Below are positions 1 to 61,225 of a DNA stretch of 64,000 nt, piece after piece. The notes under the pieces are model-generated. The model was not told the origin of the DNA, made no database searches, and worked only from the letters and a program-made list of their open reading frames with translations. The stretch's first letter is position 1, and the number at the start of each line of letters is the position of its first letter. Source of the DNA: Ylistrum balloti (lineage: Eukaryota); contig NW_026782484.1 of assembly GCF_031769215.1 (NCBI RefSeq), forward strand, positions 496,001 to 560,000, read 5' to 3'. The translations under genes and the position numbers were made by a program.

Positions 1-1332
1 GGAGATGTAACAAGGACTACAGACTGCTGGAGATGTATTCGGGACTACAGACTGCTGGAGATGTAATGTAACCAGGACAACAGACTGCTGGAGATGTATT
101 CGGGACTACAGACTGCTGGAGATGTAATGTAACCAGGACAACAGACTGCTGGAGACGTAGTCGGGACTACAGACTTATGGAGATGTAACCAGGACTACAG
201 ACTGATAAAGATATAACCAGGACAACAGACTGCTGGAGATGTAACCAGGACAACAGACAGTGGAGATGCAACCAGGACTACAGACTGCTGGAGATGTAAC
301 AGGACTACAGACTGCTGGAGATGTAACCAGGACAACAGACTGCTGGAGATGTAACAGGACTACAGACTGCTGTAGATGTAACAGGACTACAGACTGCTGG
401 AGATGTAACAGGACTACAGACTGCTGGAGATGTAACCAGGACAACAGACTGCTGGAGATGTAACCAGGACAACAGACTGCTGTAGATGTATTCGGGACAA
501 CAGACTGCTGGAGATGTAACCAGGACAATAGACTGCTGGAGATGTAACAAGGACTACAGACTGCTGGAGATGTAACCAGGACAATAGACTGCTGGAGATG
601 TAACCAGGACAACAGACTGCTGTAGATGTATTCGGGACTACAGACTGCTGGAGATGTAACCAGGACAATAGACTGCTGGAGATGTAACCAGGACAATAGA
701 CTGCTGGAGATGTAACAAGGACTACAGACTGCTGGAGATGTAACCAGGACAACAGACTGCTGTAGATGTATTCGGGACAACAGACTGCTGGAGATGTAAC
801 CATGACTACAGACTGCTGGAGATGTAACCAGGACAACAGACTGCTGGAGATGTAACCATGACTACAGACTGATGAAGATGTAGTCAGGACTACAGACTGC
901 TGGAGATGTAGTCAGGACTACAGACTGCTGGAGATGTAACCAGGACTACAGACTGCTGGAGATGTAACCAGGACTACAGACTGATAAAGATATAACCAGG
1001 ACAACAGACTGCTGGAGATGTAACCATGACTACAGACTGATGAAGATGTAGTCAGGACTACAGACTGCTGGAGATGTAACCATGACTACAGACTGATGAA
1101 GATGTAGTCAGGACTACAGACTGCTGGAGATGTAACCAGGACTACAGACTGCTGGAGATGTAGTCAGGACTACAGACTGCTGGAGATGTAACCAGGACTA
1201 CAGACTGCTGGAGATGTAACCAGGACTACAGACTGCTGGAGATGTAACCAGGACTACAGACTGCTGGAGATGTAACCAGGACTACAGACTGCTGGAGATG
1301 TAACCAGGACTACAGACTGCTGGAGATGTAAT
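1..1332. repeat. 28-bp minisatellite (CTGGAGATGTAACCAGGACTACAGACTG), truncated by the window start
   Basis: About 45 directly visible copies with 27-bp and other variants. Confidence 0.95.
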
Positions 1333-3401
1333 CAATTGAGTCTCCCACGTTAATGATATTAGCATCAATGAAACTTTGAGATAGTCGAAATCCAATGGTT
1401 TTGAACATAGTGTTGTAACATACTGACTATAAACAGATTCTCCGTGATGATCAGGCTTATGCCGGGGGCATTGGATCGCTGTATGACTTCCGTCAAAACA
1501 CCGTCACATTATTCGATCCGACAGCCTGTATCAGCCCTACTTTTGTATTCTATACACATACAAGGCTTGCCACAGAATTCTACAGAAATATGTTTTACCT
1601 TGGTATTGATGCCAGCGACACAATCGAGATAGCATGCAGATTGTTACTGTTCGGGTTACAATCTTATATATAACAAAAAGACCCTGAAAATATGAGAAAG
1701 AAATGGTAAATGTGATACATTCAAAAGCTTAAAAAAGAAAAATCGGACTAATTTTATAAGGATTGTTGATAAATTCCCCAACGAATCAACAATTTATATA
1801 TATAATTACCTACAATATAACACGTTTATTCGACTGTGATGTATGTAGAATACTAGGGTAATGTGGAAGTCCGGTTGGTCGTTACCTCTCCTTTAAGACG
1901 ATCTGGATCATTATTATTTATTTATTTATATATTTTGTTACACTTTTTTCACCGACGTGACAAATCAGAACCAAAAGTTTGTCTACTTATAAATTCATCG
2001 TCCTCGCTGACGTTCGTCGACGAGACCGTGCTTACAAATAGGAAAAGTCGAGGAGACGGGAAACATGTAACCAACCTATCACTGATGAGTGTCATTGGTT
2101 ACAACCATTTGCCGTTCTTAGAGGTGACTTTCATACATCCTATCAGTTATGCAGATTAATTTATAAGCTTTGATGCGTTACAGCATGTACAAATAAAACA
2201 ATGAAATGGTGTTTCTGAAACTCACACGAATATACGGAAAATGGAGAAGCCAAAACTCTCCCATTGTGTGTCAGAAAGGGGTGAAGGCTTGAGAGGCATC
2301 ATGACGAGCTGCACGTGAAACAGAAGGCATTTTAAGTACACGGTTTCATCACTGTGTGCTGAATTGCACTCTGCTATTTTAGATTATGCGTTTTATGCAA
2401 CCTACCCGAACTATTTTTAGATTTGCATCGACATATTTTACATGATGATGCAGACAATTGCGTAATTTGTGAGGTGACAGGCACATGAAAACGTTTGGAC
2501 CAGTACCCCTATATATAACTACATTATAATTGCACAAAAATTATCGTTTAAAACTGACATGGATATAACCCATCTTAATAAATGGACTACCAAGTGTTGG
2601 GGAAAAAAAGACATCGTAATACAGTGCTATGATAAAATCACAGAAATTGCACTTTATTCGATCCCTGTATCATAACTAACCGACCTACCACCGGGGGTGC
2701 TCTAGTGTCAAGTCTATTGACTTGTCCCTCGCCTTAGCTACCCCCCAAGGACCATATTCTAGAGACAACGACTGCTATAGAATCACGTTTGTGTTGTTCA
2801 CCTTGCCGACATTAAATGTCAATAAACTCAATTATCACGTCTTTACATCGATGGCGGACATAAAGCCCGAGTTATCTGTAATACTATAGTACTGTTGCAT
2901 GAAAGCGCCTCCCCGTACATAAACAGCACTGTATCAACAGTCATCAGGCGGCTGTGTTAATTAATACTCCAGACCCTGTCACGTGTGGTAGAGAGGAACA
3001 ATTTAGTAAACAACATTGTTACTGTTGTCAACTGAATTATGAGTGAATGGTGTAGCACAAGCAAAGCTGTCATGATCGATGTAGAAGAAACTCGCTCACG
3101 AGGAGAGTAAATATGAATGTGATGATCGTTAAGACATGGCAATCTCTCGACGGTAAAAAACATGAATACATCTGACTGAATCGTCTTTCCCTCGGGTTTA
3201 GATCCTCCTACCTCGCCTTGAACGGATGGAAAATTGTTATTCTTAAGATGTCTTTCAAAGCCTGATTTTTTTATATGCAATGAGAACATTGTAAAGACCC
3301 TAAAACTTCCCCATAATCAACATCAGCCTGCATCTCTCAAACCCCTGTCTTGTGACTTAAACGTTTCAATATGGAATCAACTTTATAATGTATGTACCAT
3401 A

Positions 3402-3567
3402 GACTGGGAAAGGTTTGTCATCCGGAAGTGTAAACATCATAGGCTGGGAATGTACGGTTTGTCATCCGGAAGTGTAAAAACCGTAGGCTGGGAATGAAAG
3501 GTTTGTCATCCGGAAGTGTAAAAACCGTAGGCTGGGAATGAAAGGTTTGTCATCCGGAAGTGTAAAT
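3402..3567. repeat. ~44-bp tandem repeat x4, each copy with CCGGAAGTG
   Basis: AGGCTGGGAATGAAAGGTTTGTCATCCGGAAGTGTAAAAACCGT. Confidence 0.9.
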
Positions 3568-4944
3568 TTCACAAGGATATCGAAATCATCACACTACAAG
3601 ACGTAGTTCTTTCCGTCGATGAAAGGTACATTTGGGGATTCTGTTTTTCATTAGATATTTCCTCATGGTAATAAGCTAATTAGGAAATTGAAACCACCGA
3701 GAAAGTGCAGGATAGAAAGTGTCGTTCATACTGTCTTATTTGTCACTGTCAAGACTTGTATGGTCCGCTTGATTTTCAAGGATCCGGTTGTTTTCCTGTG
3801 AAAGTCTGCCATTGTACTATTCTAACATTCTTTTGTCCAAAATCTTCCAAGAACAAGAAGTGATTAAAAGGAAAAGAAAAAAAACAAATGAAGAAGAAAC
3901 AAAACGAGACAAAGGAACATTTCCAAAGACTTTACTATATCGTAATATATACAAATTTACAGTTAATTTCACTGTCACATCAAGTCACAGTAAGTGAAAC
4001 AATGCAACGGTGAAGCTAACGCTATACAACCTGTTAACGATGGCTTCAGGGCCGTTTACCTACCGGTGTAATACCTTGTTTTATGTAACGTTATACATAG
4101 CATCATGTGGCATAATCAACACTCACCATACCCCACAAGGCCCTCTTGTTATAACAAAGCTAAATATGTTCTATACTATAACAGATAATACATCCATATT
4201 GGTAAAGACACAGTAACATGACCATCTATTGACGAATACAGATATTCTTTTAAAAACAAACTAATATAGAAAATTAGTTTCATACATAGGGATTTGGTTA
4301 GTTTTCTTTATGTAAAAACACTTCATTATCACAGACACAGTTTGCACGTGGCAGAAGAACAACCTATGTCGTATTGTGTTACAATACAAAATCGCGTGCG
4401 AGACACGTTACTATATCTACGGTAACCACGGAGAACTAGTGTGAGTGGACAATACAATCAATAAGACACCTGGAAATGAGGCATCGAAACAACTAAAGCT
4501 AGCAGCATTCTAAATAAAACTACCATATACTCCTTCTATATAGAATCTGTGGAAATACGTTGTTTTATTAATTAAGGTGGAGAAGTGAAAATTCCCCGAT
4601 AAAACACTTTACCTGACGTGTTCACTGTAATAACTAGTATACTTCTGCGACTTTAACACATACAATGACGTGCAGAATTTTACATACCAAGGGTATACTG
4701 CGTGTTATGGTAGTAATGGATTCGCTAGAAAATAAATATTGAGCAAAGATACTGACACAAAAGAATCAACCTAGATTCGCTAAGAAAACCTTTTCATGCA
4801 TGAGTTTAATTCTACATTATTGTAATGAAGTCATTTAATTAATGTGAAGATATTGCTCCTGTTGAAGGTTCCTTGGACTGAAATAAAAAAAATAGTGTGC
4901 AAATAGTCAAATAAGAGCACTGTTTTTTATGTGAAAATATGTAA

Positions 4945-10425: not shown

Positions 10426-11379
10426 ACAAAACAACGTGAAAAGTGTTTGATGCACCATTAAACCTTGAAGATGAAAATCTTATTTAAAATGATCACAAAA
10501 AGAGCTCCCAAAAAGTTCCCAGAAAGTTACCCGCACTGGTATCCATTTAGTTAGTTTTGATATAGTATGTTCCTACATTTATATAAAGTCCTTGTGTATA
10601 TAATCAGTATAAGAATAAGAGTGTCACAGCAGCCATTTTCTGTCTGTTATCTCCTTTGTAAGACTTCCTTTACTTGGTAAAAAAAAAACAGTTTTTTTCA
10701 ACTACCTAAATTATAAATATTTGTTGAAGATATAAGGCTTTATGTTCAAATATTGAGAATATTATTTAATTGTTTACTTCAGGGTTTTGTTTTTTTTTTG
10801 TTTTTGATTTTTTTTCAAGTTCATATTTGGAGGGAAAAGTTTACCATGTATGACTGTATAATTCTTTTGTGATACACTCATTCTATACCATTAAAAATTG
10901 GAATTCTTAAAAAATGATGATGATGATGTAAAATATTCAATTCAAATTAATGTTTGTCTTTTTATCAATTTGAATTTGTTTGAAATCATCTGTGTAGAAA
11001 TTAGTACCAAGATCGTTAATTATTAACAAGTTGTTAGAAAAATGAACTATAAAAACCATGTAGCTATGTAAGGAATGTGACAAGATAATCTGCACCGCAC
11101 AATAACTACTGACAACCAGTTATAACACTTAAACAATAACTAGTTGTCTGTAAGCAAATTAAAACAACAATGATGCACCAGAAGATTAACACAGTTAAAT
11201 TATTGTATAAAGTTCTACCATAATCTGTTAAAACATTGATGTATCAAGAACATCATATCTCAACTGTGGAGGAAGAAAAGTGGACATATAAACAGTAAAT
11301 TCCTTATTTGGAAGCAAAGTCAAATGGAAGCATTCATTTAAATGCATATAAACTGAGGGCTTTTTATCAAGGATTTCCT

Positions 11380-12262: not shown

Positions 12263-13674
12263 GTCTCAATATATGCTCACAATAGGATAGCGTCATCATT
12301 TCTATACTATATATATATATATATGTATAGTGAAACCACATTGATAAGGTCATCATTTTCGACACACATTTCACGGGACATTGATGATGACATGATGAAT
12401 AGGTTTCACAACAACTTACAATTTGATACTGTATTTTTAAGCATCTGAGAAAAATAATCAAACATTGGTCTGTTCCATGGACAAAGATGTCACAACAAAC
12501 CTAATGCTGATGGCAGCCAGTTTCTTGTACTCGGGTTGAGACATCCATATCCATGGAACAGACCCCTGTAAGATTCTATCAACCGATAAAAATCCCTTTG
12601 GAAAATCATTCACAATATCACAAAATGAAATGATTCTGAAGCTGCTCCAATCACCTTGCTAAAGCATGACAGTACATACAAGACATTTTTAACATGTTAT
12701 CATAAATATTACAGACATATTAAATGTATTTACTTCTGATCAAGAATATTGTGATGAGGGTTAGGTTGCCAAATGCGTTGAGATCTGTCCTGTATAACTG
12801 TGACTAAAGCATGAATCCTCTGTGAACATATTACATGATGTGAAATAATCAGTCTGATTATTTGAATGTACAAAACAGGTTTATCAGTCCCGTCATATAA
12901 ATCTATACCAATACAGACTACAATTTGTACTTTTGTCTTGGTCCTTGTAGAATTTTTAGTAAAGACATGACAAATGTATAATTTATATGAAATGAAAAAG
13001 TATATCATTGTACACATAATAAATAGAAATGGGTAATTTTTTTTGTGAAAATTAGCACATTGTATATTATATAAGTTATATTTAGTATATATCTATATAA
13101 ATATCACCGATTTAAAACTTTAACACGAAGAGAACCCATGAAAATACAGGTAAACGTCTGGTATGAAAAATACATGATCAAGGCACATATACATTATCAT
13201 ACGATAGATAAAACTGGTTTCTCTACCAACAGGGTGAGGAGGCGATGTTAATGATACAGCTGCAATAACGAATTGTCTTTGTGTAAGACACCACATGTAG
13301 AAAGTGTGTGGGGATGTATATATACATCCAGTGCCTAGAAACTTCCAGTCTTTCAATCGTCCCAATACCTAGCATTTATAGTCATTGGAACCAAGAACTC
13401 CTAGTCTTTCTATTGCCAGAGATACCAAGTACTGTACCAGTCACTGCCTTGAAAGTTTCATCATTCTGGTACATTCATTTCTGCCGCCAGGCCACAATAC
13501 ATTGTTTACAAGTTCTCTTTCACAAAATGTTAAGATAATCTTTTGGACTTTTAACTTGCAAACATCTGGGCTGTGGTTCCAACTTTTTCTTTCAAATTTA
13601 GATGGAGGTGACATGTGCCCATAAATATTGTTTGTAGCAAGTTAAACCTGTCGCACACAATGGTGTAATGAATA

Positions 13675-13893
13675 TCACTGGACCACACATGCTTGTGACA
13701 TATCGCCATGTCTCCCTGCTGCTTTAGCAAAACATATTGCCTGCATCCACTCATTCTGAATGTTTTCATTATCAGCATGAATATAAAATGTTCGCTTGAT
13801 ATCTTTGGATTTTATTCGGAATGCATAGTTCTTCTTGTCTATATTGGTCTCCGAGATTTCTGAATTGGTCAATGGTATTCTTTTAGATGTTTG
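13675..13893 (-). CDS. Stand-alone PH-domain/CaaX protein, coding exon 2 (QTSKRIPLTNSEI...FRI...FYIHADNENIQNEWMQAICFAK...SQACVVQ*)
   Basis: Polypyrimidine tract ttttcttttcttttcag forms the acceptor, in frame with exon 1 across a 1002-nt intron. Has PH C-terminal strands and helix (EWMQAI). TGA at 13677-13675. Spliced product is 135 aa. Confidence 0.9.
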   Translation of the reverse strand, partial: QTSKRIPLTNSEISETNIDKKNYAFRIKSKDIKRTFYIHADNENIQNEWMQAICFAKAAGRHGDMSQACVVQ

Positions 13894-14049
13894 CTGAAAA
13901 GAAAAGAAAATGCTACATTATAATGCTGGTTTCTCTGCATCGTAAGAAGAGAGCGAATAAGAAAAAACAGATTTGAATGTTTCACAAGAGGGCATATGTA
14001 ATATGTGTTGCTTTTCTGGGTTTACTGGTTACCTGGTCATATAATTTTT

Positions 14050-14400
14050 TTTTCTTTATTTGCAGTATGTCTATAGGTATAACACAATTTTGTAGAAGCA
14101 TATGTAACAGAGGTCATTATTTCAATGTCTCTGCTAGGAATCGAACCCAGGACCCTGCCTTACTAGTCTTGAAACTCAACTGATTAAGTTAGAGAGTTCT
14201 CAAACAGAAGTGTCCAAGGGTTACAGTGATATTTATAAGACAATGCTAAGTATTATTCCCGATTCTCTACAAGGGCGTCATTGTAAAGGGGGTCATTATT
14301 TATTTTAATGCCTCCGCTAGGATTCAATTCCGGGACCTATGGCTTACTAATCTGATGTTTAATCCATCACGCTAAAGACAAGTTCTCTCTAGCAGAGCAA
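14050..14400 (-). mobile_element. Two adjacent degenerate tRNA-headed SINE-like copies in the PH-CaaX intron
   Basis: B-box GGTTCGATTCC on the minus strand at 14137-14147, and a degenerate copy at 14320-14330. Both sit in a shared GGTCATTATTT...GCTAGGA...GACC...CTTACTA context. Confidence 0.5.
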
Positions 14401-14895
14401 TATATTGCAGCTGGTATTTTACCATAGTTACACATATTTCAGTTGTTGACATAATTGTTGTTGCTTGTTTTATCTAATTTACCAAACAATTGCATGATTA
14501 TCAAAGAGATAAAATTATTGTTGACATGGTCATGTTTACGGTAGTGATGGGTGTTTTCTTTTAAAAGATATCTTTTATACTTAACATGGATCAATGATGT
14601 GTTTGTAATCATGAGTGTCCATCAACTGTAGCATGTTTGAAGGGCAAACTTTCAAACGACAATGTTTAACATGTCAAACAGGTAGACTAACTGAATATGT
14701 TCATGTACTTATCAAAGTGTGTGATATCCATACCAATAAAAATGATATTTTTAAATGAAGAAATTAATATCACGTTTACCAAAACATATGTTCCTAACCT
14801 ACATATAGTTACACTTTAGCAGAAACATAGGTCTCAACTCAACAAGTAGTCCTAGATCAGCAGATGTTATTGCGAAACAAGCTGTCAAATCTAAC

Positions 14896-15084
14896 CTCGG
14901 GTGTGTCCCCATAGGCAAGTTCGGTGTTCTTTAGCAAAAACCACTGTTTCTTCCATTTCTTCGACATCTTCGATCTTTTCATCAGCCATCCCTTCATTTC
15001 TATGTGCGTTACGCTGTCGTCGTTGTGACTACTGGTGGTATTTAGGCTGTTCGTCCGACTATCAGAGGACTCCGAGGAAGCCAT
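14896..15084 (-). CDS. Stand-alone PH-domain/CaaX protein, coding exon 1 (MASSESS...KGWLMKRSKMSKKWKKQWFLLKNTELAYGDTPE)
   Basis: ATG at 15084 (minus strand). Contains a PH beta1-beta2 motif (KGWLxK...WKKQWFxL). Ends GAG|GTTAGA at a phase-0 donor (GT at 14895-14894). Confidence 0.9.
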
Positions 15085-15599
15085 TTCTACCGTCGTCAAA
15101 TTTTGTTGTGCCGTAAACCGATCTAGGTGTTTGTCGCAACAATGCTTGATAAATTACATTTTACTGAAGTTTTACTCTACAACCATAATATTGACAAGAC
15201 AATTATATATAATATGAATAAGTCATTGTATTTAACAATATGAGATAAAAGAAGAACAATTTGTACGACATCTATTATAGATCATGTCACGTGATTGACT
15301 AAGTGAGGCGATTTGGGAAAATAAAGTTGCGTTGACTTGTCAGAGTGACTGTGCGTGATATAGGTAGCACCTGCTGTCCACGTAATCTGTGGGACGGACA
15401 GTTACACATATAATCAACCTGCTCACAGACGAAACACGCCTCAGTGATGCTGACAAGTTGAATTCTACCAATATCAACCAAGTTGAATTATATTTCCGAG
15501 ACAGCAGGTTCGTTTACCCCGGAAGCTAACAGGAGAATATTTTGATGTCATCTAGACGTGGTGACATCGCCTAGTCGGAGGGATCGAACACATGGCAAG
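15085..15599. promoter_or_regulatory. Probable bidirectional promoter and 5'UTRs between the PH-CaaX gene and PRKD
   Basis: Divergent ATGs at 15084 (-) and 15600 (+). Motifs seen: GTCACGTGA E-box 15286-15294, CCGGAAG ETS core 15519-15525, TGATGTCA CRE-like 15543-15550. Transcription start sites cannot be seen from sequence. Confidence 0.6.
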
Positions 15600-15728
15600 A
15601 TGGAAGACGGGAGGAAAAGTTTGACTTTCCAAATGCAAATAGGTCTTACTCGAGACCAAATAAATGTGGATGGGGAATTGACTTTAGCGAGCTTGAAAGA
15701 CATCGCTTGTTCGTTTGTGGATAGAAAG
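15600..15728 (+). CDS. PRKD: Protein kinase D exon 1 (ubiquitin-like domain, N-terminal part)
   Basis: MEDGRKSLTFQMQIGLTRDQINVDGELTLASLKDIACSFVDRK matches the PKD ULD pattern (FxxQIGLxRE...LKDxxCSxVxxK). Donor AAG|GTGAGA, phase 0. Confidence 0.9.
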
Positions 15729-18700
15729 GTGAGATGTGTATTGTATATTGTGATCTGTGTTAGTATGTTGGGGACAACGGAAGTGTATCATCTTGGGCTA
15801 CCAAATCGTGAGACACACCCTCCACCTAAACAATGCCTCACGGTTCAAGTGTTGACTTAATCATTACACCCTTGCTATTTTTGAACTTCATTCAATGAGA
15901 TCGTGAATTTATACTGTAATGCATCGTTGAATGATGATCCAAGTGAATACATTGTACCAGGTTTACATATTAAACAGAATGGCTTTCCAGTGTTGAGACA
16001 TGTACCCTTTGAAACGTTAGGTTTACTCTATATATATATGACTGAATAATAAGATTACACACTTTACCTCTTAGTCCAGACTTGATAAACAGTAAACTAC
16101 AGTTTGTATAGAAGTAGGTAAATTACCTAACCTACCTTTATCCAAACATTACTATTGATGTGTATGATGACCACGTTGAACGGCTATGATGGTATCATGC
16201 TTACATTCCTATCTCTTCTTTTCCTAAACGATAGGAAATAGCTAAAATATTTTTTATATAACATTAATTGGTAATATTTATTGTCGCCTTGGAAGAAATA
16301 CCAAAATATTCACTGAAGGGACAGGATAGAGGTATGTGTTCCGCGCAATTTAAACACTCAGGGAAGTTCAATGAAACTATTGAAAGTCCATTGGAAAGAT
16401 TTAAGAAAGAAAAGCTTCACCTTTAGAGTTGATGGCTAAATGGAACAGTCTGCCAGAACACGTAGAGGACCTGGTCGTGCAGGCAAAGGCAGCATCTGTA
16501 AACAGAAATCAACTTATCATATAATAACACAGAAATCAGTCATGAAATCACACACACATTTTATAAGAATTTCTTGAAATGGAATCATCACCAGGTACAT
16601 TTACCTATGTTACAATTACACATAATGAATGAATGTCAATACTCCTATGAGTAAAATGGATGTTCTACTCAAGGCCCTGTGATGAGTTATTTAATCAGTT
16701 TTGAATTTCCAAATTTCTGGTATATTCATAATTATTCCAGGGTTTCCTGATATTTGATATCTTCTGATTGAAATTTAAGTACAGTCAAATTTTTATGATT
16801 TGGATTTCTTGATGTAGTAAAGTTTTTGTCTGGTCACAAATTTTATTCCTGTATATTAACAAAGTCTCACTTTTTAGTTTTAAGCATATAAGCATGAGAA
16901 ACACAGTGATTTATCTGTCAGTCATACATGCTCCGATTGATCCAGAGCATAGGAAAACACTCTTGTAACATCTACGACCAAAGATGTATGATGTTAGTGC
17001 TATTGTTTCTGGACAGAATACATTATGATATTAATTTGCTTTCTTTTGAATTCATTAGTGCCTATGCCATTGATGTATCAGTCTTTAACTAATTACTGTA
17101 ACATGTGAAGACCATGCACTTTCATGCTGCATGTCGTTTCATTTAAAAGCAACATGTACAAAGCATATACTGTGTGAAATGAAAGCTAAATGTCTTGTTG
17201 ATTTCTATGTAAAGTAATATCTTTTTAAATGAATGAAAATGTTTTGTTTAAAGATATGAAATCATCTTTTCATTCAAACTTGTGTTTTGGTATTTGTCGT
17301 GGTTGTTAAGGTAGAAATATTGTGTCATCAACCATTACAGCTATGAATATGAAAATGTCGATTTAACCCACCATGCATGAATGAAAGTCTCCATGTATCA
17401 AAAGTTTTTGGTAGTCCCTTGAACTTTGAAACAGTGATATAAACCAAGAAAATCAAGAATATGGGCCTGAAAACTTAAACTTATCAGTGAAAGAAGATCA
17501 GGAGATTTCAAACTGTTAACCGAACAAGTGAAATTGTTTTTATATTTCTGATGGTAAGTTACTTCAGTAGAACCTTATCAACCAAGTTTTGTAGGCATAC
17601 TGTTGTGCTATATGTTAATAATACGTGCATGTCTGTGTTAGACTATTTATATGCAGGTAAATGTCTGTGCATTTCCTACAAAGTATTTCAAAATAGGAAT
17701 ATATTTAAATCTGATTTATTTTACACATTGCTCTACTCATTAATTTTACATATAAATGCAGATGTATAGAGATGCACTTATTATCACCATTTAACATATA
17801 TCTATTCATTCTTAAAGCACTAGAGGCAATTCTGGAATTTTTATTGAACAAAATTGATTGCTTATTCCATACAAAAACATACAGAAACAGGTGTAAGCTT
17901 TCTGTAATGACGTGGCAATAAATAAAAAGCTCGAAATAAACTACTTACAAATTACAAGATTAACATTTGCTTCTGAGACTTGTTAGTTACTTTCAGATTC
18001 AGAAGGTGTGTTTTCCCTGTTCCAACCCTTAAATTCCTTAAAATCTAATATGTTGGGACCTCCAGATATCAGGCCAAGTGGTTTGGGGTACTTTTCCATA
18101 AAAATCAACTGAGGTTCTTGGAGGCATTCTGTTTTTCTCCAAGGATTATTTTTTTCTGCACAATGCCATATAATTGTTTATTCTAATATTCTAAATCTGC
18201 ATATTTCGTCACATTGATTGAAAATGTAGGGTTACAGAAAAGGTTACAGAAATGAGTAAAATCACAGTTTTACTATAGCACAAGAAAGTCGAATCAAAAA
18301 CCAAAAAAACTACGTTAGTACCATCACTTGTTTTACAATAGCTCGACATATGCAAAAAAAATACAAAACAAAATGAAAACAAATCTGCTTTAATGTATAA
18401 CGTCAGTATTAAGTTTTATAAAAGTGAACATAGCAGTATAAGGATTGAAGAGATAATCATTAGATTGATTTATTATCACCATTGCTTAAAAAGTTCTTTT
18501 CTGGTTCAAATTAAATTGGTATTGTTTGAATGCCATTATTGTAATCTGTTTATTTAGTCATGTTAATATCTAGATCATCACATAGCACTTTACTTTGTTG
18601 AGTTTTTAAGAAGCATTTATCTGAGTGACCTTATCTGCAGTAATTACATACAGCATACTGAAAGTTTACAATCATGATGTCCAGCTCGATATGATTATTG

Positions 18701-21104
18701 ATGTATTAATCAGTTTATACAGAAAGTAAATGGCAATCCACTGACAAAAGTAGAGCTGTTCTCATATACTGACATCATGATATATTGTGATCGCAGAAGC
18801 AAAAGATATATATCATGAAAAGTTATTAAGATTGGCAATATTGCCACCAGCAAAAAATAAAACAATAATATATCTTGGTAAAAAAAATATTAAAGAAAAA
18901 TTAAGCCACAGGGGCTGTATCAAAATACCATTAAATCAATTTATCACTAAAAACTGTCCTTTCATTTTATTAGATACTTAAATGTCTAAACACTAAGGCA
19001 TAGTACAGTATTTCTAAAAATGGATTGAGAAATACTCTCAGCAACATGGTCATTAAAATGCTTGTTTAATGTTCAATAGCTGCAAAGCATCTTTATAGCC
19101 ACACTTTAAAAATGAGGTTATGCTTCCACCAGTAAGATAAAAAGTTTTTGGTTACAGGAACATGTCTTCTAATATTATGTTTGACATTGTAATAGCCAGG
19201 GGGACAATTTATTTTATCACAAAATATATATTGCATATATTCTGGTAAAGAAATAACATTGTGATAACTTTTAGGTCATGTTGTGTGTCAGATTTTTTCA
19301 TTGATAACGAAAAACAAATGGAACAAAGTTTTGTGTTCAGATTTTATTGGCAAAAATTAGGTTATTATTGCAACAATATCTGTACGTTTTGATGATATCC
19401 CGGTGGAGATTTTTATCACGATAACAGCTCTAGAAAAAAATCACGTTAATTTTAATCTCGTGTATAGAAATCATAGCACAACACTTTCTCATAAAAATCT
19501 CAATACCACTGCCAAGAGTGATCCAAGGGTTTCTTCAATTTATTCATATAACAAATTGACACACAAATCCGCAGATGTTCTGTATATGCATCTTTTGCTG
19601 AAACCCATGAGAGTACAATAGATACTCATTATCACTTTTCCTGATTTCGCGGTATTCCCAGACATATATATATAAAATCCAGATTATAAGAATTATCTCC
19701 CTTTAACACATCAATGTTCCTGAGGAGACAACCTTTGTTCTAATTAACTGGCTTTCAGCTAGAAAGAGAGAACAATAATTGATAACCCTTTGGTCCGGAA
19801 GTTTCCAATGAGCTGAAAATCTTGGAGAATTCAAAATTCCTTAATATCATTTTGAGATGGCAGTCTTGAAATCTTTTTCCGATTTCAGTTAACATTAGAA
19901 GTAGAAATTAGGTAGAAAGTGCAATTCATTCATGACGTGTGAATGTATTACATTTTGCAATTTTTCCAGACATTTTTAAAACGTCTTTCTTGTACTCTGG
20001 TCCTGAATTTGAAAACACTGATACTTTCTTTGATCTAATTACTGGGAAAACAAATTAATTATTTGCCTATGAACTTCACCAAAAGATATTTGAAAGTAAC
20101 AATTGGGGAAAAGTTGATAAAAGAGCTTATTGTTATTGGAATTATTGGTGTATACTCAGAAAGATGATTACTATTCCTCCATTGTAACACAATATATCAT
20201 ACTTCATTTATCTTATTTGTGTAGTGTAGTTTTCGTTAACAAGGTCATTTATCCCTGGCCACAATCCCATAAGTAAAAATTACATGTAGCTCTCTGGGCA
20301 AATCTGACATAATAAGATATCCATGGAGGACAGTACTGGTATACCATCCCTGCTGATATCATCATATTTTCTTAGTATAGGGGACCAACATGTACATGTA
20401 GCTTGCTACAGGACCACATGTAATGGCCAAAATAAATACAGGAAAATGCACTATGTGTGTCAAAACTGTGAATATTTGGTTATAATTATACTGTGTCCTA
20501 TATTAACCTCAGAATCTATATGTACATAATTATATGTGTCTATATAGTAATGTGGAGCTAGATGTTACCGTGTGCATGATGACAATTCCAACAGTGAGGT
20601 TGTATTGTTGTGGTATGGAATGTACAGTGAATGATCTTCATGTATTGTCCATTTTTTTTTTATATAAATATGAAATATGAGTCTGTCTGGCCACTGGTGT
20701 TGGGATTAGAATTTCCCAAACATTGTAAATGTCAGACATGACTGAGTGGGAGTAAGTTTGAGTCATATTAGGAAATGTTTGTGAGGAGGACGAGGGGGTG
20801 GCTAATGGAAATCATAGGTTTATAAATATGCATTTTTTTTTCAAAGGCAAAACATACAGAATAATTGACCTTTGTCATGGCATTTGGAAAATTATTTTGT
20901 GTATACGTATCACTGTACAATTTTTACCACATTTTCATGTTATACTGCTATCTGGCGCTTTTGCTATTAAATTCACAACAATTTATGCATGTCTGCTCTT
21001 AATCTTTTTATATAAAGTCAGTATTTTTCTTAATTATAGCAACATAGCATTAAGATACATATATTCCATAAACAGGTAATCACATTGTTTAATTTTACCA
21101 AATT

Positions 21105-21280
21105 CAGGGTTTTCCATAAGAGCCGGTCGCCGTCCAATTTGACCGGCTACTTTGATCATTTAGCCGCCTACACCAATCTAGTTCCGTAATAATGTTCCGT
21201 ACATGACTACACGTACACGGCAGGACAGCCTCCTATTTTCAATACACATCCTACTATTGACAAAATTATGGAAAACCCTG
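21105..21280. mobile_element. 176-bp MITE with perfect 15-bp TIRs
   Basis: CAGGGTTTTCCATAA (21105-21119) and TTATGGAAAACCCTG (21266-21280). AAATT direct repeat on both flanks. Internal 8-bp stem AGCCGGTC/GACCGGCT. Confidence 0.8.
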
Positions 21281-22049
21281 AAATTAAAAGACAATTTAAT
21301 CTACATGGCTTTCCTAATCAGCCAAGCCAAATTCACACATTTCCTATATCTGTTAATAGAACTGGGGACTATTAAAATGTAACTCACCTGATAAGAGTTG
21401 TATTGTTTCATGTTTAATACAGATGTTATTGGTACGTTAATTACAACATCAGGCCACCTAATGATCAGGACTGACATAATATTATCAAGTATTTTGTTAC
21501 ATGTTTAATTTGTATAAATTCATAATATCAAATATCACATTCTTCCCTACAAATTGACATCAAGAAGTGTCTTTATAAGCATACGTCTACTGATTTTTAT
21601 ATGTAGTTATAGAAGGTACAGTAGGATACAAATGTACTTGTATTTATGTTATATATGTATACTGTCTACAGAAACATCCATAAATATATCCATTTGTTTT
21701 CCTCTGAGTCCTCTGGCATGGGGTCAATGGGTTGTGTAAATCACCACACTCTATATATTTATACAACCTGGTCATCCTATGTAAGATAAATTAATTAGGG
21801 TTAATGTTAAAGTCTGTAGGAAGTATATGTAGTCCTTCAGGCTAACCTGATATCAAATATATAGGAGGGAAAAGGAGAAAACAATGTGCTATAATGTTGA
21901 AATAAAATTGCTACTTGAAAGGTAGTTATAAGACTTTTAAATTGAATTCTCCAAAAATTGTCTCCTGACTTTGATTTAAATGAATTGCATTAGAAATGTA
22001 TATGATCTATCATAAGGACATAGTGGGTACCTCAGCATTGGTATCAATT

Positions 22050-22770
22050 GCCTGTTGTATATACTGACAGTTGTACCTCAACATCAGTATCCACAACCTG
22101 CTGTATAAACTTTTAGTTGTACCTCAGCATCAGTATCTATGACCTGCTGTATATACTGACAGCTGTACCTCAACATCAGTATCCATGACCTGTTGTATAT
22201 ACTGACAGTTGTACCTCAACATCAGTATCCATGACCTGCTGTTTATACTGACAGCTGTACCTCAACATCAGTATCTATGACCTGCTGTATATACTGACAG
22301 CTGTACCTCAACATCAGTATCCATGACCTGTTGTATATACTGACAGTTGTATCTCAACATCAGTAAACATGACCTGCTGTTTATACTGACAGCTGTACCT
22401 CAACATCAGTATCCATAAACTGCTGTTTATACTGACAGCTGTACCTCAACATCAGTATCCATGACCTATTGTATATACTGACAGTTGTACCTCAACATCA
22501 GTAAACATGACCTGCTGTTTATACTGACAGCTGTACCTCAACATCAGTATGCATGACCTATTGTATATACTGACAGCTGTACCTCAACATCAGTAAACAT
22601 GACCTGTTGTCAATATACTGACAGTTGTATCTCAACATCAGTATACATGACCTGCTGTTTATACTGGCAGCTGTACCTCAGCATCGGTAAACATGACTTG
22701 TAAATATACTGAAAGCTGTACCTCAACATCAGTATCCATGACCTGTTGTAAATATACTAACAGTTGTATT
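22050..22770. repeat. 46-bp minisatellite (ACAGCTGTACCTCAACATCAGTATCCATGACCTGTTGTATATACTG)
   Basis: About 15 copies. Degenerate copies reappear at 23680-23770. Confidence 0.93.
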
Positions 22771-23094
22771 ATTCTACTTCTAAACACTGTAAGATATATA
22801 CATGCATATGATCTATTAACATGGAATCTTGTATACCTCTTTCGTACTTCTCTCTCACACAAACCGAAATCTCAAACAACTTTTTTATCACAGAACAAAT
22901 ACATTCAAATATCTAAATATTTTGGCTCTGTTGTTGGCTGTGTCTGTAGGAAAAGCCACTTGAGATATAACTTCAGATTCTTGTATATCTATGGATCATC
23001 TCGCTACAACAGTATGAGAACTAGTTAACTGTTACCATAAACTAACCTAGATCAGGGACTGAAAGTCCCCTATGCTGGAACCAGAGGTTCCAAA

Positions 23095-23570
23095 GGGACT
23101 GGAGATTCCAGAGCCTAAGTGGAAATCGGTGGTCCAAGAGTCTATGTGGGGACTCGAGGTCCCAGAGCCTTAGTGGAAATTGGTGGTCCAAGAGTCTATG
23201 TGGGGACTCGAGGTCCCAGAGCCTAAGTGGAAATCGGTGGTCCAAGAGTCTATGTGGGGACTCGAGGTCCCAGAGCCTAAGTGGAAATCGGTGGTCCAAG
23301 AGTCTATGTGGGGACTCGAGGTCCCAGAGCCTAAGTGGAAATCGGTGGTCCAAGAGTCTATGTGGGGACTCGAGGTCCCAGAGCGTAAGTGGAAATCGGT
23401 TGTCCAAGAGTCTATGTGGGGACTCAAGGTCCCAGAGCGTAAGTGGAAATCGGTTGTCCAAGAGTCTATGTGGGGACTTGAGGTCCCAGAGCGTAAGTGG
23501 AAATCGGTGGTCCAAGAGTCTATGTGGGGATTCGAGGTCCCAGAGCGTAAGTGTGGACCAGAGGTCATAG
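23095..23570. repeat. 54-bp GC-rich minisatellite (GAGTCTATGTGGGGACTCGAGGTCCCAGAGCCTAAGTGGAAATCGGTGGTCCAA)
   Basis: About 8 copies. The 18-aa periodicity in three ORF-track entries derives from it. Confidence 0.93.
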
Positions 23571-24629
23571 AATTTATGTGGGGACCAAGAACCTATGTGG
23601 GGACCATCTGCAAATCTGTCCATCCATTCATCTATTGTCAGATGACCGTTAAGGGCCATGGTCCTCTTGTTATCTTAATATCAGTATCCAAGACCTAATG
23701 TATATACTGCCAGTTGTACCTCAGCCTTAGTTTTCACAATCTGCTGTATATATGTACTGATAGTTCTACCTAAGTAAAAATGTTTATATCAGCTGTGTAT
23801 ATACTCATGTCTTATTTTGACTGGTTTGGGATTGGGTATTTTGGTCTTATTTCAGGAGAAAATGTGTGAAGTGGGAAGGATGTTTTCAGGTGTGAATTTC
23901 AAATTTTTTGGAATTTCGTTAAAATATGAAATAATTTCAATTCAAATTCATGAAACCATTATTAGCTATAAAAATCCCCCCAAATGCTCTGATGCTGTCA
24001 TTTGTATCTCAGCATTGATTTGTACGGCCTGCCAGTTAGGTAACATATCAGTGCTGAAACTAAGACAAAGTCTAGAAATATTGCGTCATAACTGAAATCT
24101 TATATTCCACATGGAAATACACTTTCACATTTGTGGCAATGTCATTGATTGTTAATGGTCATTTTTCTCTCTTTAAACCTATCAGAATGTGTGTCTTATT
24201 GCATATTACTTGTAATTCCCTCATGTGGAGTGTTACCTCATTACTTTCATGAAGGCTTACACAATATCTGTACCACTAAGACCCCAATTAATGTAAACTA
24301 GAAAAGTTTTACTTTTTTAAACAGCAAGATTCAAATTATAAAAGTTAATCATGCAAATTTTATATACTTATGCCAGTAAATCAATAAACCTACATATGTA
24401 AACAGAACTAATTATAACTGGCCACTTCCAGTATTTCTTTCTAGACTTTGTCACAATATCAAAATATGTATTGTACTTAAGGAATTATATTGCTTTACTG
24501 TGCAATTACATCTATAAATACTTTCATGCAAATCCTTAAGCTTATTTGCATATTAAACTGGATGCATAACTTTGTGGAATTTTTTTACATGTTGACATCT
24601 GACTTTGAGTAACCTTTGTCTTAGTTCCA

Positions 24630-25528
24630 TTTTTAGCTCACCTAGCCCTAGGGCAAATCGAGCTAATTATGGCATATACTGCAGCATCTGTTGACTGTCC
24701 CTCTGCCCTTGGGGCCTGACGGATTGGTCTCAAAAGGAAAAATTTTGAAAATTCTTTAAAAAGTTTTTTTTATGTATGAATGTTTTGATTTTGACCAAAT
24801 TTGGCCAGAAGCATTAGGTTAAGTCCTTCTTCCTCTGTAGCAAAGTCAAGATTTTGTCCCAGCTTGGTCTGAAACATCCCGGTGTGAAGGGGAATCAATT
24901 TCATATAAACTATGAGCTTGAGGAGCTCCACACCCTGAGGCAAAAGGTGCAGGGTGCAGTAAAGGAATGGAGATGAAGTAAATACAGCCAACTTCAAAAT
25001 TCATCTTCTTCTCTAGAAGTGGCAGGTTTCTGTCCTAATTTGGTTTGAAAGATCCTTAGGTGAAGGGGAATTGATTTTAATTAAATGGTTTGACTCAGTC
25101 ACCTTGAGAAGGAGGGTCAGGGCCCAGTTGAGGAAATAGAACAAAAAAAAAAATTCTGTAGGAATTTGGTGCCAATTTTGTCTGATTGAGCATGGATGGG
25201 TGAAGAGAAATCTATTTTGTATGCACAGTGGATCTAGGCCACATGGAATGGGAGGGGTGGGGCCTGATAGGGGTAATACACTTAATTATTGAAAATTAAT
25301 CTCTTCTTTAAGAATTGCAGGATTCTGACCAAATATGGTCTGAAGCATGCTTTGGTGAAGCAGAACTGTGTATAAATGATTTACCTAACCTCTTGGAGGC
25401 AGAGGGTCAGGGCCCAATGGGATAGATAATAGATAAAACACTTGGAATTTCTTTTCCTTAAGTTTGGATGAAACAATTTCAGTCAAACAAAGAAAGGTAG
25501 ATGATACAGGCCCAATAGGCATATTGTT
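24630..25528 (+). mobile_element. Helentron/HINE-like non-autonomous element with degenerate ~150-bp internal repeats
   Basis: 5' end TTTTTAGCTCACCT...GAGCTAATT, GTCY-type tract and degenerate internal subunits. 3' end AGGTAGATGATACAGGCCCAATAGGCATATTGTT resembles the family 3' hairpin motif. Confidence 0.65.
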
Positions 25529-31269: not shown

Positions 31270-32010
31270 TAGCTTAATACATACACAGTAACCCAGTAAA
31301 CATACACTCATCCTTAACTAAATACATACACAGTAACCCAGTAAACATACACTCATCCTTAACTAAATACATACACAGTAACCCAGTAAACATACACTCA
31401 TCCTTAACTAAATACATACACAGTAACCCAGTAAACATACACTCATCCTTAACTAAATACATACACAGTAACCCAGTAAACATACACTCATCCTTAGCTT
31501 AATACATACACAATAACCCAGTAAACATACACTCACCCTTAACTAAATACATACACAGTAACCCAGTAAACATACACTCACCCTTAACTAAATACATACA
31601 CAGTAACCCAGTAAACATACACTCACCCTTAACTAAATACATACACAGTAACCCAGTAAACATACACTCACCCTTAACTAAATACATACACAGTAACCCA
31701 GTAAACATACACTCACCCTTAACTAAATACATACACAGTAACCCAGTAAACATACACTCATCCTTAACTAAATACATACACAGTAACCCAGTAAACATAC
31801 ACTCATCCTTAACTAAATACATACACAGTAACCCAGTAAACATACACTCACCCTTAACTAAATACATACACAGTAACCCAGTAAACATACACTCACCCTT
31901 AACTAAATACATACACAGTAACCCAGTAAACATACACTCACCCTTAACTAAATACATACACAGTAACCCAGTAAACATACACTCATCCTTAACTAAATAC
32001 ATACACAGTA
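31270..32010. repeat. 45-bp minisatellite (AAATACATACACAGTAACCCAGTAAACATACACTCA(T/C)CCTTAACT)
   Basis: About 16 near-identical copies. Confidence 0.95.
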
Positions 32011-47499: not shown

Positions 47500-49700
47500 G
47501 TGTGTCACAGCTGTGTCAATAATTTGGGTGTCACAGTTGTGTTAGTACTTAGTGTGTCACATCTGTGTCTGTACTCAGGTCATTGTGTCACATTTGTGTC
47601 TGTACTCAGGTCAATGTGTCACATCTGTGTCTGTACTCAGATCAATGTGTCACATCTGTGTCTGTACTCAGGTCAGTGTGTCACATCTGTTTCAGTTTAT
47701 AGTAAGTCGGTGTGTCACATCTGTGTCTGTATTTAAGGTCAATGTGTCACATCTGTGTCTGTACTCAGGTCAATGTGTCACATCTGTGTCTGTACTCAGG
47801 TCAATGTGTCACATCTGTGTCTGTAATCAGGTCAATGTGTCACATCTGTGTCTGTAATCAGGTCAATGTGTCACATCTGTGTCTGTACTCAGGTCAATGT
47901 GTCACATCTGTTTCAGTTTATAGTAAGTCTGTATGTCACATCTGTGTCTGTATTTAAGGTCAATGTGTCACATCTGTGTCTGTACTCAGGTCAATGTGTC
48001 ACATCTGTTTCAGTTTATAGTAAGTTGGTGTGTCACATCTGTGTCTGTATTTAAGGTCATTGTGTCACATCTGTGTCTGTACTCAGGTCAATGTGTCACA
48101 TCTGTTTCAATTTATAGTAAGTCTGTATGTCACATCTGTGTCTGTATTTAAGGTCAAAGTGTCACATCTGTTTCAGTTTATAGTAAATCGGTGTGTCACT
48201 TCAGTCTGTATTTAAGGTCAATGTGTCACATCTGTGTCTTTACTCAGGTCAATGTGTCACATCTGTTTCAGTTTATAGTAAGTCTGTGTCACATCTGTGT
48301 CTGTATTTAAGGTCATTGTGTCACATCTGTGTCTGTATTTAAGGTCATTGTGTCACATCTGTGTCTGTACTCAGGTCAATGTGTCACATCTGTTTCAGTT
48401 TAAAGTAAGTCGGTGTGTCACATCTGTGTCTGTATTTAAGGTCATTGTGTCACATCTGTGTCTGTACTCAGGTCAATGTGTCACATCTGTTTTAGTTTAA
48501 AGTAAGTCGGTGTGTCACATCTGTGTCTGTATTTAAGGTCATTGTGTCACATCTGTGTCTGTACTTAGGTCAATGTGTCACATCTGTTTCAGTTTATAGT
48601 AAGTCTGTGTCACATCTGTGTCTGTATTTAAGGTCATTGTGTCACATCTGTGTCAATACTTGTATGTCTGTGTGTCATGTTTGTGTCAGTACTTAGTGTG
48701 TCACATGTGTGTCTGTACATTGTATGTCAGTGTGTCACCTGTGTGTCTGTACATTGTATGTCAGTGTGTCACGTGTGTCTGTACATTGTATGTCAGTGTG
48801 TCACATGTGTGTCCGTACATTGTATGTCAGTGTGTCACATGTGTTTCATTACTTAGAGCATCAGTGTCACATGTGTTTTGTTACTTTGAGCGTCAGTGTG
48901 TCACATGTGTGTCCGTACATTGTATGTCAGTGTGTCACATGTGTGTCTGTACATTGTATGTCAGTGTGTCACATGTGTGTCCGTACATTGTATGTCAGTG
49001 TGTCACATGTGTGTCATTGCTTAGAGCATCAGTGTGTCACATGTGTTTCGTTACTTTGAGCGTCAGTGTGTCACATGTGTGTCACATCTTACTTTGTCAC
49101 AACTGTACTGCATTAGTAATTATTGTGTAACAGCTGTATCAATAATTGATATTTGGATCAGTGTCTCACAGCTTCATCAATACTTGTTGTCACAGCTGTG
49201 TCCTGTTTCATTACTTGATGTGTCACAGCTGTATTACATTTCGTATTCCATTATGTCACAGCTGTGTTACATTTGGTATTCCATTATGTCACAGCTGTGT
49301 TACATTGGGTATTCCATTATGTCACAGCTGTGTTACATTTGGTATTCCATTGTGTCACAGCTGTGTTACATTGGGTATTCCATTATGTCACAGCTGTGTT
49401 ACATTTGGTATTCCATTGTGTCACAGCTGTGTTACATTTGGTATTCCATTATGTCACAGCTGTGTTACATTTGGTATTCCATTATGTCACAGCTGTGTTA
49501 CATTTGATATTCCATTATGTCACAGCTGTGTTACATTTGGTATTCCATTATGTCACAGCTGTGTTACATTGGGTATTCCATTATGTCACAGCTGTGTTAC
49601 ATTTGGTATTCCATTATGTCACAGCTGTGTTACATTTGGTATTCCATTATGTCACAGCTGTGTTACATTTGGTATTCCATTGTGTCACAGCTGTTTAAAT
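47500..49700. repeat. Compound TGTCACA-core array (31/34-bp units, then a 34-bp unit, then a 33-bp unit)
   Basis: Three successive sub-arrays. The last is TGTCACAGCTGTGTTACATTTGGTATTCCATTA x~14 (49230-49700). Confidence 0.92.
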
Positions 49701-49874
49701 ACTTATTCTGAAATAGCAAAGGTTTCTTTGGCAAAACATCAAAGTATTTTGAGATTGTTTTTTGTAAACTTAGCACTCAGGATTATATGATATCGAATGG
49801 AATTTACCTGCTTGTAATTATGATGATATCATGTGATATTTTTGTGTTAGAAACAAAGTTTATAATGTGAAATC

Positions 49875-60359: not shown

Positions 60360-60400
60360 AGAAACAAGGTCAGCAGGGTTCAGGAACTGATGAACAACAG
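60360..60400 (+). CDS. PRKD: Protein kinase D exon 11 (41-nt PH-kinase linker exon)
   Basis: ctcttatattacag|AG; (E)KQGQQGSGTDEQQ. Donor CAG|GTAAGC. It supplies exactly the phase 1 to phase 0 correction needed between exons 10 and 12. Confidence 0.8.
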
Positions 60401-61225
60401 GTAAGCATACTGACTGGTGACAAGTAGGCTAACTGACCAACAACAGGTAAACATGACTGGTGACAGGTAGACAAACTGACCAACAACAGGTAAACATGAC
60501 TGGTGACAGGTAGGCAAACTGACCAACAACAGGTAAACATGACTGGTGACAGGTAGGCAAACTGACCAACAACAGGTAAACATGACTGGTGACAGGTAGG
60601 CAAACTGACCATCAACAGGTAGACATGCTGACTGGTGACAGGTAGACAAACTGACCAACAACAGGTAAACATGACTGGTGACAGGTAGACAAACTGACCA
60701 ACAACAGGTAAACATGACTGGTGACAGGAAGGCAAACTGACCAACAACAGGTAAACGTGATGACTGGTGACAGGTAGGCTAACTGTCAACAACAGGTAAA
60801 CATGCTGACTGGTGACAGGTAGACAAACTGGCCAACAACAGGTAAACATGCTGACTGGTGACAGGTAGACAAACTGACCAACAACAGGTAGACATGCTGA
60901 CTGGTGACAGGTAGGCTAACTGTCAACAACAGGTAAACATGCTGACTGGTGACAGGTAGACAAACTGACCAACAACAGGTAAACATGCTGACTGGTGACA
61001 GGTAGACAAACTGACAAACAACAGGTAAACATGCTGACTGGTGACAGGTAGACAAACTGACCAACAACAGGTAAACATACTGACTGGTGACAGGTAGGCT
61101 AACTGTCAACAACAGGTAAACATGCTGACTGGTGACAGGTAGACAAACTGACAAACAACAGGTAAACATGATGACTGGTGACAGGTAGACAAACTGACCA
61201 ACAACAGGTCAACATACTGACTGAT
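60385..61225. repeat. 43-46-bp array derived from the exon 11 donor junction
   Basis: AACTGACCAACAACAGGTAAACATG(CTG)ACTGGTGACAGGTAGACA x~19. Confidence 0.93.

Follow-up and report, generated by a model that had tools for sequence, protein, structure and literature searches.

A stand-alone PH protein ending in a farnesyltransferase-type CaaX box, encoded in the scallop Ylistrum balloti and conserved from cnidarians to fishes

Two-signal farnesylated proteins supplement the prenyl group with a helper in the same tail, a polybasic stretch in K-Ras4B and a palmitoylated cysteine in H-Ras. The cooperation of a folded lipid-binding domain with a single prenyl group has so far been examined mostly with engineered PH-CAAX fusions and with Ras tails. 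Other small PH proteins follow different designs. The evectins (PLEKHB1/2) are anchored by a hydrophobic C-terminal segment and not by a prenyl group, and PHLDA2 and PHLDA3 consist essentially of one PH domain, with PHLDA3 reported to compete with Akt for membrane lipids, a model for a PH-only protein. Here we describe a two-exon gene of the scallop Ylistrum balloti whose product is a single PH domain followed by a C-terminal CaaX box. The gene lies on the minus strand at 13675 to 15084 of a window of 64,000 nucleotides (NCBI RefSeq assembly GCF_031769215.1, contig NW_026782484.1, positions 496,001 to 560,000 of the forward strand), and all scallop coordinates below are positions in this window. 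We found that the PH domain and the cysteine of the CaaX box have been kept together across at least nine animal phyla. We think it probable that the protein is farnesylated and that two signals, the lipid anchor and the basic face of the PH domain, hold it on membranes.

How does this protein compare with the described systems? Like K-Ras4B, H-Ras, and Rab28, the scallop protein and its relatives present a farnesyltransferase-type CaaX box on a linker, here predicted to be flexible, and like them they would need a second membrane signal. However, they have no GTPase domain, and the second signal is not in the tail but would come from a folded lipid-binding domain. The evectins are likewise small, with an N-terminal PH domain and a C-terminal membrane anchor, and the PH domain of evectin-2 was among both our sequence matches and our fold matches, although the sequence similarity is weak. 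In contrast to the evectins, the scallop protein has only the CaaX box and no hydrophobic stretch. PHLDA2 and PHLDA3 are similarly small, but they have no CaaX box and occur in mammals, whereas the scallop family was not found in tetrapods; neither was among the sequence matches in any of our searches. The scallop protein is a member of none of these groups, engineered PH-CAAX anchors included. PH domains and CaaX boxes are both known modules, but their stand-alone, deeply conserved combination does not seem to have been described. The family would offer a natural test case for the cooperation of a folded lipid-binding domain and a single prenyl group in membrane targeting.

The coding sequence starts at a minus-strand ATG (15084) that is preceded, 23 codons upstream, by an in-frame stop. 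Exon 1 (14896..15084, 63 codons, phase 0) encodes a Ser/Thr-rich acidic N-terminal tail (N-tail, residues 1-28) and strands beta1 to beta3 of the PH domain, including the Lys-rich beta1-beta2 loop; as derived from the DNA, it is identical to residues 1-63 of the public model P0001. A phase-0 GT..AG intron of 1,002 nt (13894..14895, minus strand) falls in the beta3-beta4 loop, with the donor GAG/GTTAGA and the acceptor TTTTCTTTTCAG/CAA, which has a strong polypyrimidine tract. Exon 2 (13675..13893, minus strand, 219 nt, 72 codons plus TGA) encodes strands beta4 to beta7, the C-terminal helix, a flexible linker, and the CaaX box. This box, Cys132-Val-Val-Gln135, occupies 13678..13689 and is followed by the TGA at 13675-13677. 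A sequence-only reading of this stretch had proposed a Ser/Thr-rich N-tail, a single PH domain, and an SQACVVQ terminus, and we re-derived the same product of 135 residues (aa) from the DNA. It matches the NCBI model P0001, 'PH domain-containing protein DDB_G0274775-like [Ylistrum balloti]', at 100% identity. The public annotation chose the same splice, and the gene model was already public. The two-exon gene is intact. Its product begins with a disordered N-tail that is acidic and rich in Ser and Thr, continues with one PH domain, and ends in a short flexible linker that carries CVVQ.

The assignment to the PH fold is supported by sequence profiles and by structure prediction. The whole protein matches the Pfam PH profile (PF00169) with 61.1 bits, against a gathering cut-off of 25.1, over residues 29-119 and profile positions 2-103 of 105. 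In a separate scan with the same 105-position profile, exon 1 matched positions 2-32 (E = 6.9e-6) and exon 2 matched positions 46-104 (E = 1.4e-7). Since the exons cover complementary halves of the profile, the splice rebuilds one PH domain. The Pfam scan of the scallop protein gave no domain beyond generic PH, and a scan of NCBIfam, a library aimed at prokaryotes, gave no match. An AlphaFold2 (AF2) model shows a PH fold over residues 29-123 with a confidence score (pLDDT) above 90, made up of seven strands (29-102) and the C-terminal helix (106-123). In the same model, the N-tail (1-25) and the C-terminal tail (126-135) are disordered, with pLDDT below 50 over 126-135. The top Foldseek matches were the PH domains of PLEKHA7, PLEKHA5/6, GRP1, TAPP1, and Akt, and more than 350 PH structures matched at E ≤ 0.001. 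In an alignment of 20 sequences from cnidarians to fishes, the sole invariant residues are W44, R97, W112, which is the signature Trp of the helix, and C132. The helix motif W-M-Q-A-I-C-F-A-K is conserved as a whole, and M113, A115, C117, and A119 are near-invariant across phyla.

By profile, the closest solved PH domains are those of the IPCEF1/CNK type and of PLEKHA4-7 (PDB 5mr1, 2yry, 2d9y, 2dkp, and 7kjz; E 7e-12 to 1e-10), which also hold Foldseek ranks 1, 2, 4, and 5. IPCEF1 is the best solved sequence match (E = 7.3e-12), and the beta2 Arg that is replaced in the scallop protein (see below) is absent there too (W-K-K-F-W-V). However, all of these are domains inside larger proteins that have no C-terminal CaaX box, and their identity to the scallop protein is ~24-30%. 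No named family is closer than these. The scallop protein, consisting of a PH domain and two tails with a CaaX end, does not have the multi-domain architecture of IPCEF1 and CNK, and the 'IPCEF1-like' label that NCBI gives to the Argopecten and Haliotis orthologues is by similarity only. Two other kinds of match were set aside. Multi-PH proteins ranked high in an exhaustive search through summed domain scores and are not orthologues, and choline-binding repeats among the solved-structure matches to the second half of the protein are chance matches, only the TAPP1 and IPCEF1 rows being informative.

Is the terminal CaaX box more than a chance ending? Its recurrence in relatives argues that it is. 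Among family models of at least 105 aa, 73 of 78 end in CaaX (C-x-x-x), and these come from at least nine phyla. The five exceptions were matched over about half their length or overrun the expected stop (P0020), and they look like fragments or faulty models. In CaaX-ending relatives, X is Gln in 88 and Ser in 2; a2 is always Val, Leu, or Ile, and a1 is Val in 68 of 84 distinct tails. The terminal Cys, on whose conservation in orthologues the sequence-only reading had made its proposal depend, is the same in all full-length relatives that align well, from Nematostella through gar. The predicted prenyl Cys is conserved as strongly as the signature Trp of the fold, and the spacing between the two is 19-21 residues in 60 of the 64 tails in which the helix Trp could be placed.

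A CaaX box with Ser, Met, Gln, Ala, or Cys as X is of the farnesyl type, as opposed to one with Leu or Phe, and Gln in particular directs farnesylation and not geranylgeranylation. The scallop terminus follows the sequence rule for farnesyltransferase substrates, with Cys four residues from the end, aliphatic a1 and a2, and a farnesyl-type X. The sequence-only reading had called CaaX with X = Gln a farnesyltransferase-type signal; this is an established rule, and the CxxQ box of Rab28 (-CAVQ) is prenylated exclusively by farnesyltransferase (PMC1847700). Maurer-Stroh and Eisenhaber include in the prenylation motif a flexible hydrophilic linker, typically of ~11 residues (PMC1175975). The scallop linker, G-R-H-G-D-M-S-Q-A, is small, hydrophilic, and disordered in the AF2 model, where the helix ends at residue 123.

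The tail holds no obvious second membrane signal. The last 10 scallop residues have a net charge of -1 and no other Cys, and in the family as a whole the 12 residues upstream of the Cys contain no extra Cys in 80 of 84 tails and between 0 and 3 Lys or Arg. The sequence-only reading had noted for the scallop protein that no polybasic or palmitoyl second signal lies next to the CaaX box, and this point holds. Palmitoylation beside the box was considered and rejected, as there is no nearby Cys and C117 sits in the folded helix. Two positions of the linker are strongly conserved: of the 84 tails, 73 have Ser at -3, and the residue at -1 is Ala in 74 and Leu in 4. INPP5A, which ends in CCVVQ and is farnesylated, is a possible parallel on which we do not rely.

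Does the PH domain read 3-phosphoinositides in the canonical way? In an ungapped HMMER alignment of residues 30-55 with the Akt1 PH domain, K36 corresponds to K14, R37 to R15, K39 to E17, K45 to R23, and Q47 to R25. The CAG codon of Gln47 lies at 14944..14946 on the minus strand, within the motif W-K-K-Q-W-F. The sequence-only reading had pointed to this Gln at the position of Akt R25 and to a Lys-rich beta1-beta2 loop, and both descriptions are accurate. The net charge is +8 in residues 33-52 and +9 on the PH domain. R97 aligns with the Arg of 'SRTFYV' in TAPP1 and also with R86 in the Akt1 sequence 'ERTFHV'. By alignment, three of the four classical basic contacts are kept and one is Gln. 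The protein lacks the full 3-phosphoinositide signature of Akt1 (K14, R23, and R25), as K36 and K45 are kept and the R25 position is Q47.

Position 47 varies widely across the family. Gln (20 members) and Ala (21, in fishes) are the most frequent residues, followed by Arg (9), Met (7), Lys (5), Val (3), and Leu (3), and Thr or Ile also occur; Arg is found only in sea urchins, a nemertean, and a few other members. The Gln itself is therefore not conserved; it marks particular lineages (molluscs, cnidarians, and ambulacrarians) and is no hallmark of the family. This lack of constraint argues against a canonical 3-phosphoinositide pocket as the conserved function, which is probably not high-affinity, stereospecific reading of these lipids. 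The earlier suggestion that the protein may not read 3-phosphoinositides canonically stands insofar as the R25 position is Gln here and variable elsewhere, but the Gln on which it was built marks only some lineages. The basic residues K36, R37, K43, and K45 of beta1-beta2, together with R97, are conserved as in lipid-binding PH domains, and a role of the basic PH face as the second membrane signal fits the charge pattern.

One further position in this segment may be mentioned. The codon of Lys39 (14968-14970) aligns with Akt1 Glu17, and the family usually has Lys or Arg there. The best solved matches to the beta1-beta2 segment are the Akt1 E17K entries 2uzr and 2uzs, which score best because the scallop protein has Lys at this position.

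Relatives were collected by a word-indexed search and three profile searches, with cluster look-ups for names. One of the profile searches, built on 19 sequences, was an exhaustive HMMER scan of 1.84 billion representatives. Family members are ~120-155 aa long, or 199-201 aa in cephalopods, which have a longer N-tail. They are present in Cnidaria (Nematostella and Exaiptasia), in bivalve, gastropod, and cephalopod molluscs, in Brachiopoda (Lingula), Nemertea (Tubulanus), and Annelida (Dimorphilus, Ridgeia, and Lamellibrachia), in echinoderms (a crinoid, sea urchins, and a sea cucumber) and Hemichordata (Saccoglossus), in tunicates (Phallusia and Styela), and in ray-finned fishes (Polypterus, Polyodon, Amia, Lepisosteus, and many non-acanthomorph teleosts). 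The family matches included nothing from tetrapods, sharks, lampreys, arthropods, or nematodes, a provisional result given that the searches were limited in length range and word content.

Gene structure supports orthology. Searching nine orthologues against their own loci with tblastn, we found two coding exons at 9 of 10 loci, with the intron placed just after the conserved Y-G-x-x-x-E loop, a position common to Nematostella through gar. The last exon is exactly 219 nt long in scallop, Lottia, Nematostella, gar, and sea urchin. The orthologue group, which includes proteins named DDB_G0274775-like, pleckstrin homology-like, and Si:ch73-111k22.3, shares with the scallop protein its length class, its two-exon gene with the 219-nt last exon, and the order of tail, PH domain, and S-x-A-C-a-a-Q, at 30-96% identity. 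Nothing of substance differs, with position 47 and the N-tail varying by lineage. The family is at least as old as the last ancestor shared by cnidarians and bilaterians. At the Lingula locus (L013), the last exon of the orthologue matches three places (10504-10731, 12353-12580, and 15479-15706) at 98.7% identity. Either the exon region was recently duplicated in tandem or the assembly is at fault here.

Public names for these proteins are automatic and inconsistent, among them 'IPCEF1-like', 'rho GTPase-activating protein 22-like', 'DEF6-like', 'oxysterol-binding protein 1', 'kinesin-related protein 1', and 'pleckstrin homology-like domain-containing protein'. The sole gene symbol is the clone-based Si:ch73-111k22.3 of cyprinid, zebrafish-type fishes, whose cluster came first in the ESM Atlas both by language-model features (0.95) and by structure. 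We found no paper on the family in a literature search that did not reach most subscription journals, and no function is recorded. A paper that names DDB_G0274775 concerns a Dictyostelium protein in an interactome and is silent on this family. With a generic Pfam PH match, automatic names, and no paper found, we agree with the sequence-only reading that the protein cannot be assigned to a named family; membership in a well-characterised family, which would have refuted that reading, is not what we see. Orthologues in zebrafish-type fish (si:ch73-111k22.3), tunicates, and sea urchin open the family to genetics. The apparent absence from tetrapods, with no human orthologue, limits direct medical relevance and provides a clean example of the lineage-specific loss of a signalling module.

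How might such a protein work? We propose that cytosolic farnesyltransferase would add a C15 farnesyl group to Cys132, after which the usual CaaX processing would remove VVQ and methylate the new C-terminus. A lone farnesyl would hold the protein only weakly on a membrane, and the tail has no polybasic or palmitoyl helper, so the task of supplying the second signal would fall to the PH domain, whose basic beta1-beta2 face may bind anionic lipids or phosphoinositides. The protein would then sit only on membranes that offer both signals, a coincidence-type anchor acting like a natural version of the PH-CAAX constructs of cell biology. Once on the membrane, it might occupy and mask lipid headgroups or offer its conserved C-terminal helix to a partner.

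Several points weigh against this proposal. Our literature search found no experimental paper on farnesylation, CaaX processing, membrane binding, or lipid preference of any member. Both the basic face and the surface exposure of conserved residues in the helix are predicted from sequence, the downstream role as lipid mask or adaptor is speculation, and the support for the 14896/13893 junction consists of homology, the public model, and the transcripts of relatives. Finally, the distance from the end of the helix to the Cys is ~8 residues, against the ~11 that are typical (PMC1175975).

The nearest neighbor of the PH-CaaX gene is a protein kinase D gene on the opposite, plus strand (15600..25084, locus L006). 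The two are arranged head-to-head, and the first coding exon of the kinase gene (MEDGRKSLTFQMQIGL...) starts at 15600. The 837-aa model has a PRKD1-type N-terminal ubiquitin-like domain, two C1 domains, a PH domain, and a kinase domain, and the gene continues past 25084. The 515-bp spacer between the divergent start codons (15085..15599; GC 0.39; 21 CpG observed versus 19.5 expected) is a candidate bidirectional promoter shared by the two genes. The same head-to-head pairing occurs in Lingula (L013) and spotted gar (L010), and it is missing at 7 of the 10 loci inspected. On the other side, a MOCS3-like gene encoding ThiF and rhodanese domains lies tail-to-tail downstream in Saccoglossus (L009:26197-29377), gar (L010:15353-21876), and the crinoid Antedon (L011:12365-16517). 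Neither neighbor was present within 10 kb in Lottia, Nematostella, sea urchin, loach, or Dimorphilus, and tblastn detected no MOCS3-like coding sequence in the scallop window. Altogether, the loci suggest an old PRKD - PH-CaaX - MOCS3 arrangement that is partly eroded, which is no proof of a functional link, and the divergent gene pair points to an ancient microsynteny or to a promoter used in common with protein kinase D. The repeated pairing provides a concrete hypothesis on where to search for the function. In the loach Triplophysa (L014:12277-20745), a CNKSR (CNK2/3-type) gene directly follows the orthologue on the same strand; the CNKSR family is, with IPCEF1, the source of the closest solved PH domain by sequence.

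Could the scallop model be an annotation artefact, either a decayed gene or two exons of a larger transcript? Two observations would fit such an artefact. A search of sequencing runs found no RNA run containing the scallop stretch, the sole match being DNA contigs that span the intron, and there is no canonical AATAAA within 2.1 kb past the stop, a single ATTAAA following at 2.2 kb. However, the reading frame is intact behind its upstream in-frame stop, the nearest gene is on the opposite strand, and full-length orthologues with the same two-exon structure are present in nine other genomes. Another individual (DNA run X1) differs at 13 of 2,101 bases and at 0 of the 408 coding bases among them, which fits purifying selection, although the numbers are too small for a test. 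Transcript-like Logan contigs of two further bivalves (L001, for P0004, and L002-L005, from four runs, for P0006) bracket the same open reading frame: in each, the coding sequence is uninterrupted, the 5' leader contains an in-frame stop, and an untranslated stretch of 0.5-1.4 kb comes after CVIQ-stop. The sequence-only reading had raised the danger that transcripts splice to a different last exon; both of these bivalves use the same last exon and stop after CVIQ. Between the scallop gene and the L001 coding sequence, differences are mostly synonymous, CaaX codons included (TGT GTG GTC CAG versus TGT GTA ATA CAA), and no similarity was found between the scallop and the relative's transcript in the 3' untranslated region. 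We give an artefact almost no credence. It is also very improbable that the protein is a soluble PH module whose C-V-V-Q end is kept for some purpose unrelated to prenylation, be it as a degron, as a C-terminal recognition motif, or for a Cys with a redox or metal-binding role. The linker, slightly shorter than the typical 11 residues, would be compatible with this, as would the fact that prenylation of family members is predicted from sequence, but all features of a farnesyltransferase substrate (Cys as the fourth residue from the C-terminus, aliphatic a1 and a2, Gln or Ser as X, and a hydrophilic linker predicted to be flexible) are conserved together, and we know of no other C-terminal motif that requires this combination.

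If the protein is farnesylated, what does its PH domain bind? The PH domains of GRP1 and FAPP bind Arf/Arl-type GTPases, and it is conceivable, though unlikely, that the main ligand here is likewise a protein, either such a GTPase or protein kinase D, which would make the protein a membrane-tethered adaptor or decoy and its basic face secondary. The C-terminal helix is far more conserved than in PH domains generally, suggesting a constrained surface, the lipid-pocket position 47 is unconstrained, and the head-to-head position of protein kinase D, seen in one mollusc, one brachiopod, and one fish, would fit co-regulation. Yet the small conserved residues of the helix may merely pack against the sandwich, the basic residues are conserved as lipid binding would have it, and gene adjacency, absent as it is from most of the loci inspected, is not evidence of physical interaction. 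A different possibility adds to the two-signal anchor and does not replace it. The protein could be cargo of a prenyl chaperone of the PDE6-delta type, with the Ser at -3 and the residue at -1 setting its affinity and destination, for example Arl3-dependent delivery to cilia; we regard this as rather doubtful. Affinity for PDE6-delta is set by the -1 and -3 residues, and Ser at -3 with Ile or Met at -1, as in INPP5E and GRK1, gives nanomolar binding and Arl3-specific release (PMC5512577). The conserved linker positions of the family are exactly these two, and they are held more tightly than a mere linker needs. However, the family has Ala at -1, a residue outside those covered in that study and for which affinity is not predictable, sea urchins carry Ser there, and small residues also fit the general linker preference of prenyltransferases.

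The two-signal farnesylated anchor can also be joined to both the chaperone and the neighboring kinase gene, although the combination as a whole is improbable. The protein would then be a natural PH-CAAX module. A conserved S-x-A-C(farnesyl) code, read by the chaperone, would set its destination, and a divergent promoter, maintained from the bilaterian ancestor onward, would link its expression to that of protein kinase D. Its role would be to tune phosphoinositide- or diacylglycerol-linked signalling on a specific membrane, for instance that of the Golgi or the cilium, and tetrapods and ecdysozoans would each have lost the gene independently.

The N-tail contains a motif, DS-RTNSL (residues 8-14, D-S-R-T-N-S-L; 15043-15063), that is near-invariant in molluscs and absent elsewhere, and the R-x-x-S within it is a possible target of a basophilic kinase. 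We considered a protein kinase D consensus phosphosite here and rejected it, as R10-x-x-S13 carries Asp and not Leu at -5. N-myristoylation was likewise rejected, as the N-terminus reads MAS and Gly2 is absent.

The remaining features concern repeats. Within the intron, a high-copy interspersed repeat (14081..14435) with tRNA-like ...GGTTCGATTCC... ends reached a summed contig depth of 235-4,170 in DNA run X1, versus ~9-10 on its flanks; it looks like a short interspersed element and lies outside the coding function. The window as a whole has 31-43% G+C and zero N, and it contains many minisatellite arrays that yield long spurious open reading frames. Such arrays lie at 175-836, 23042-23698, 31499-32002, 48618-49790, 60370-61169, and 62036-63061, and their long repetitive open reading frames, which run on both strands, are almost certainly not genes.

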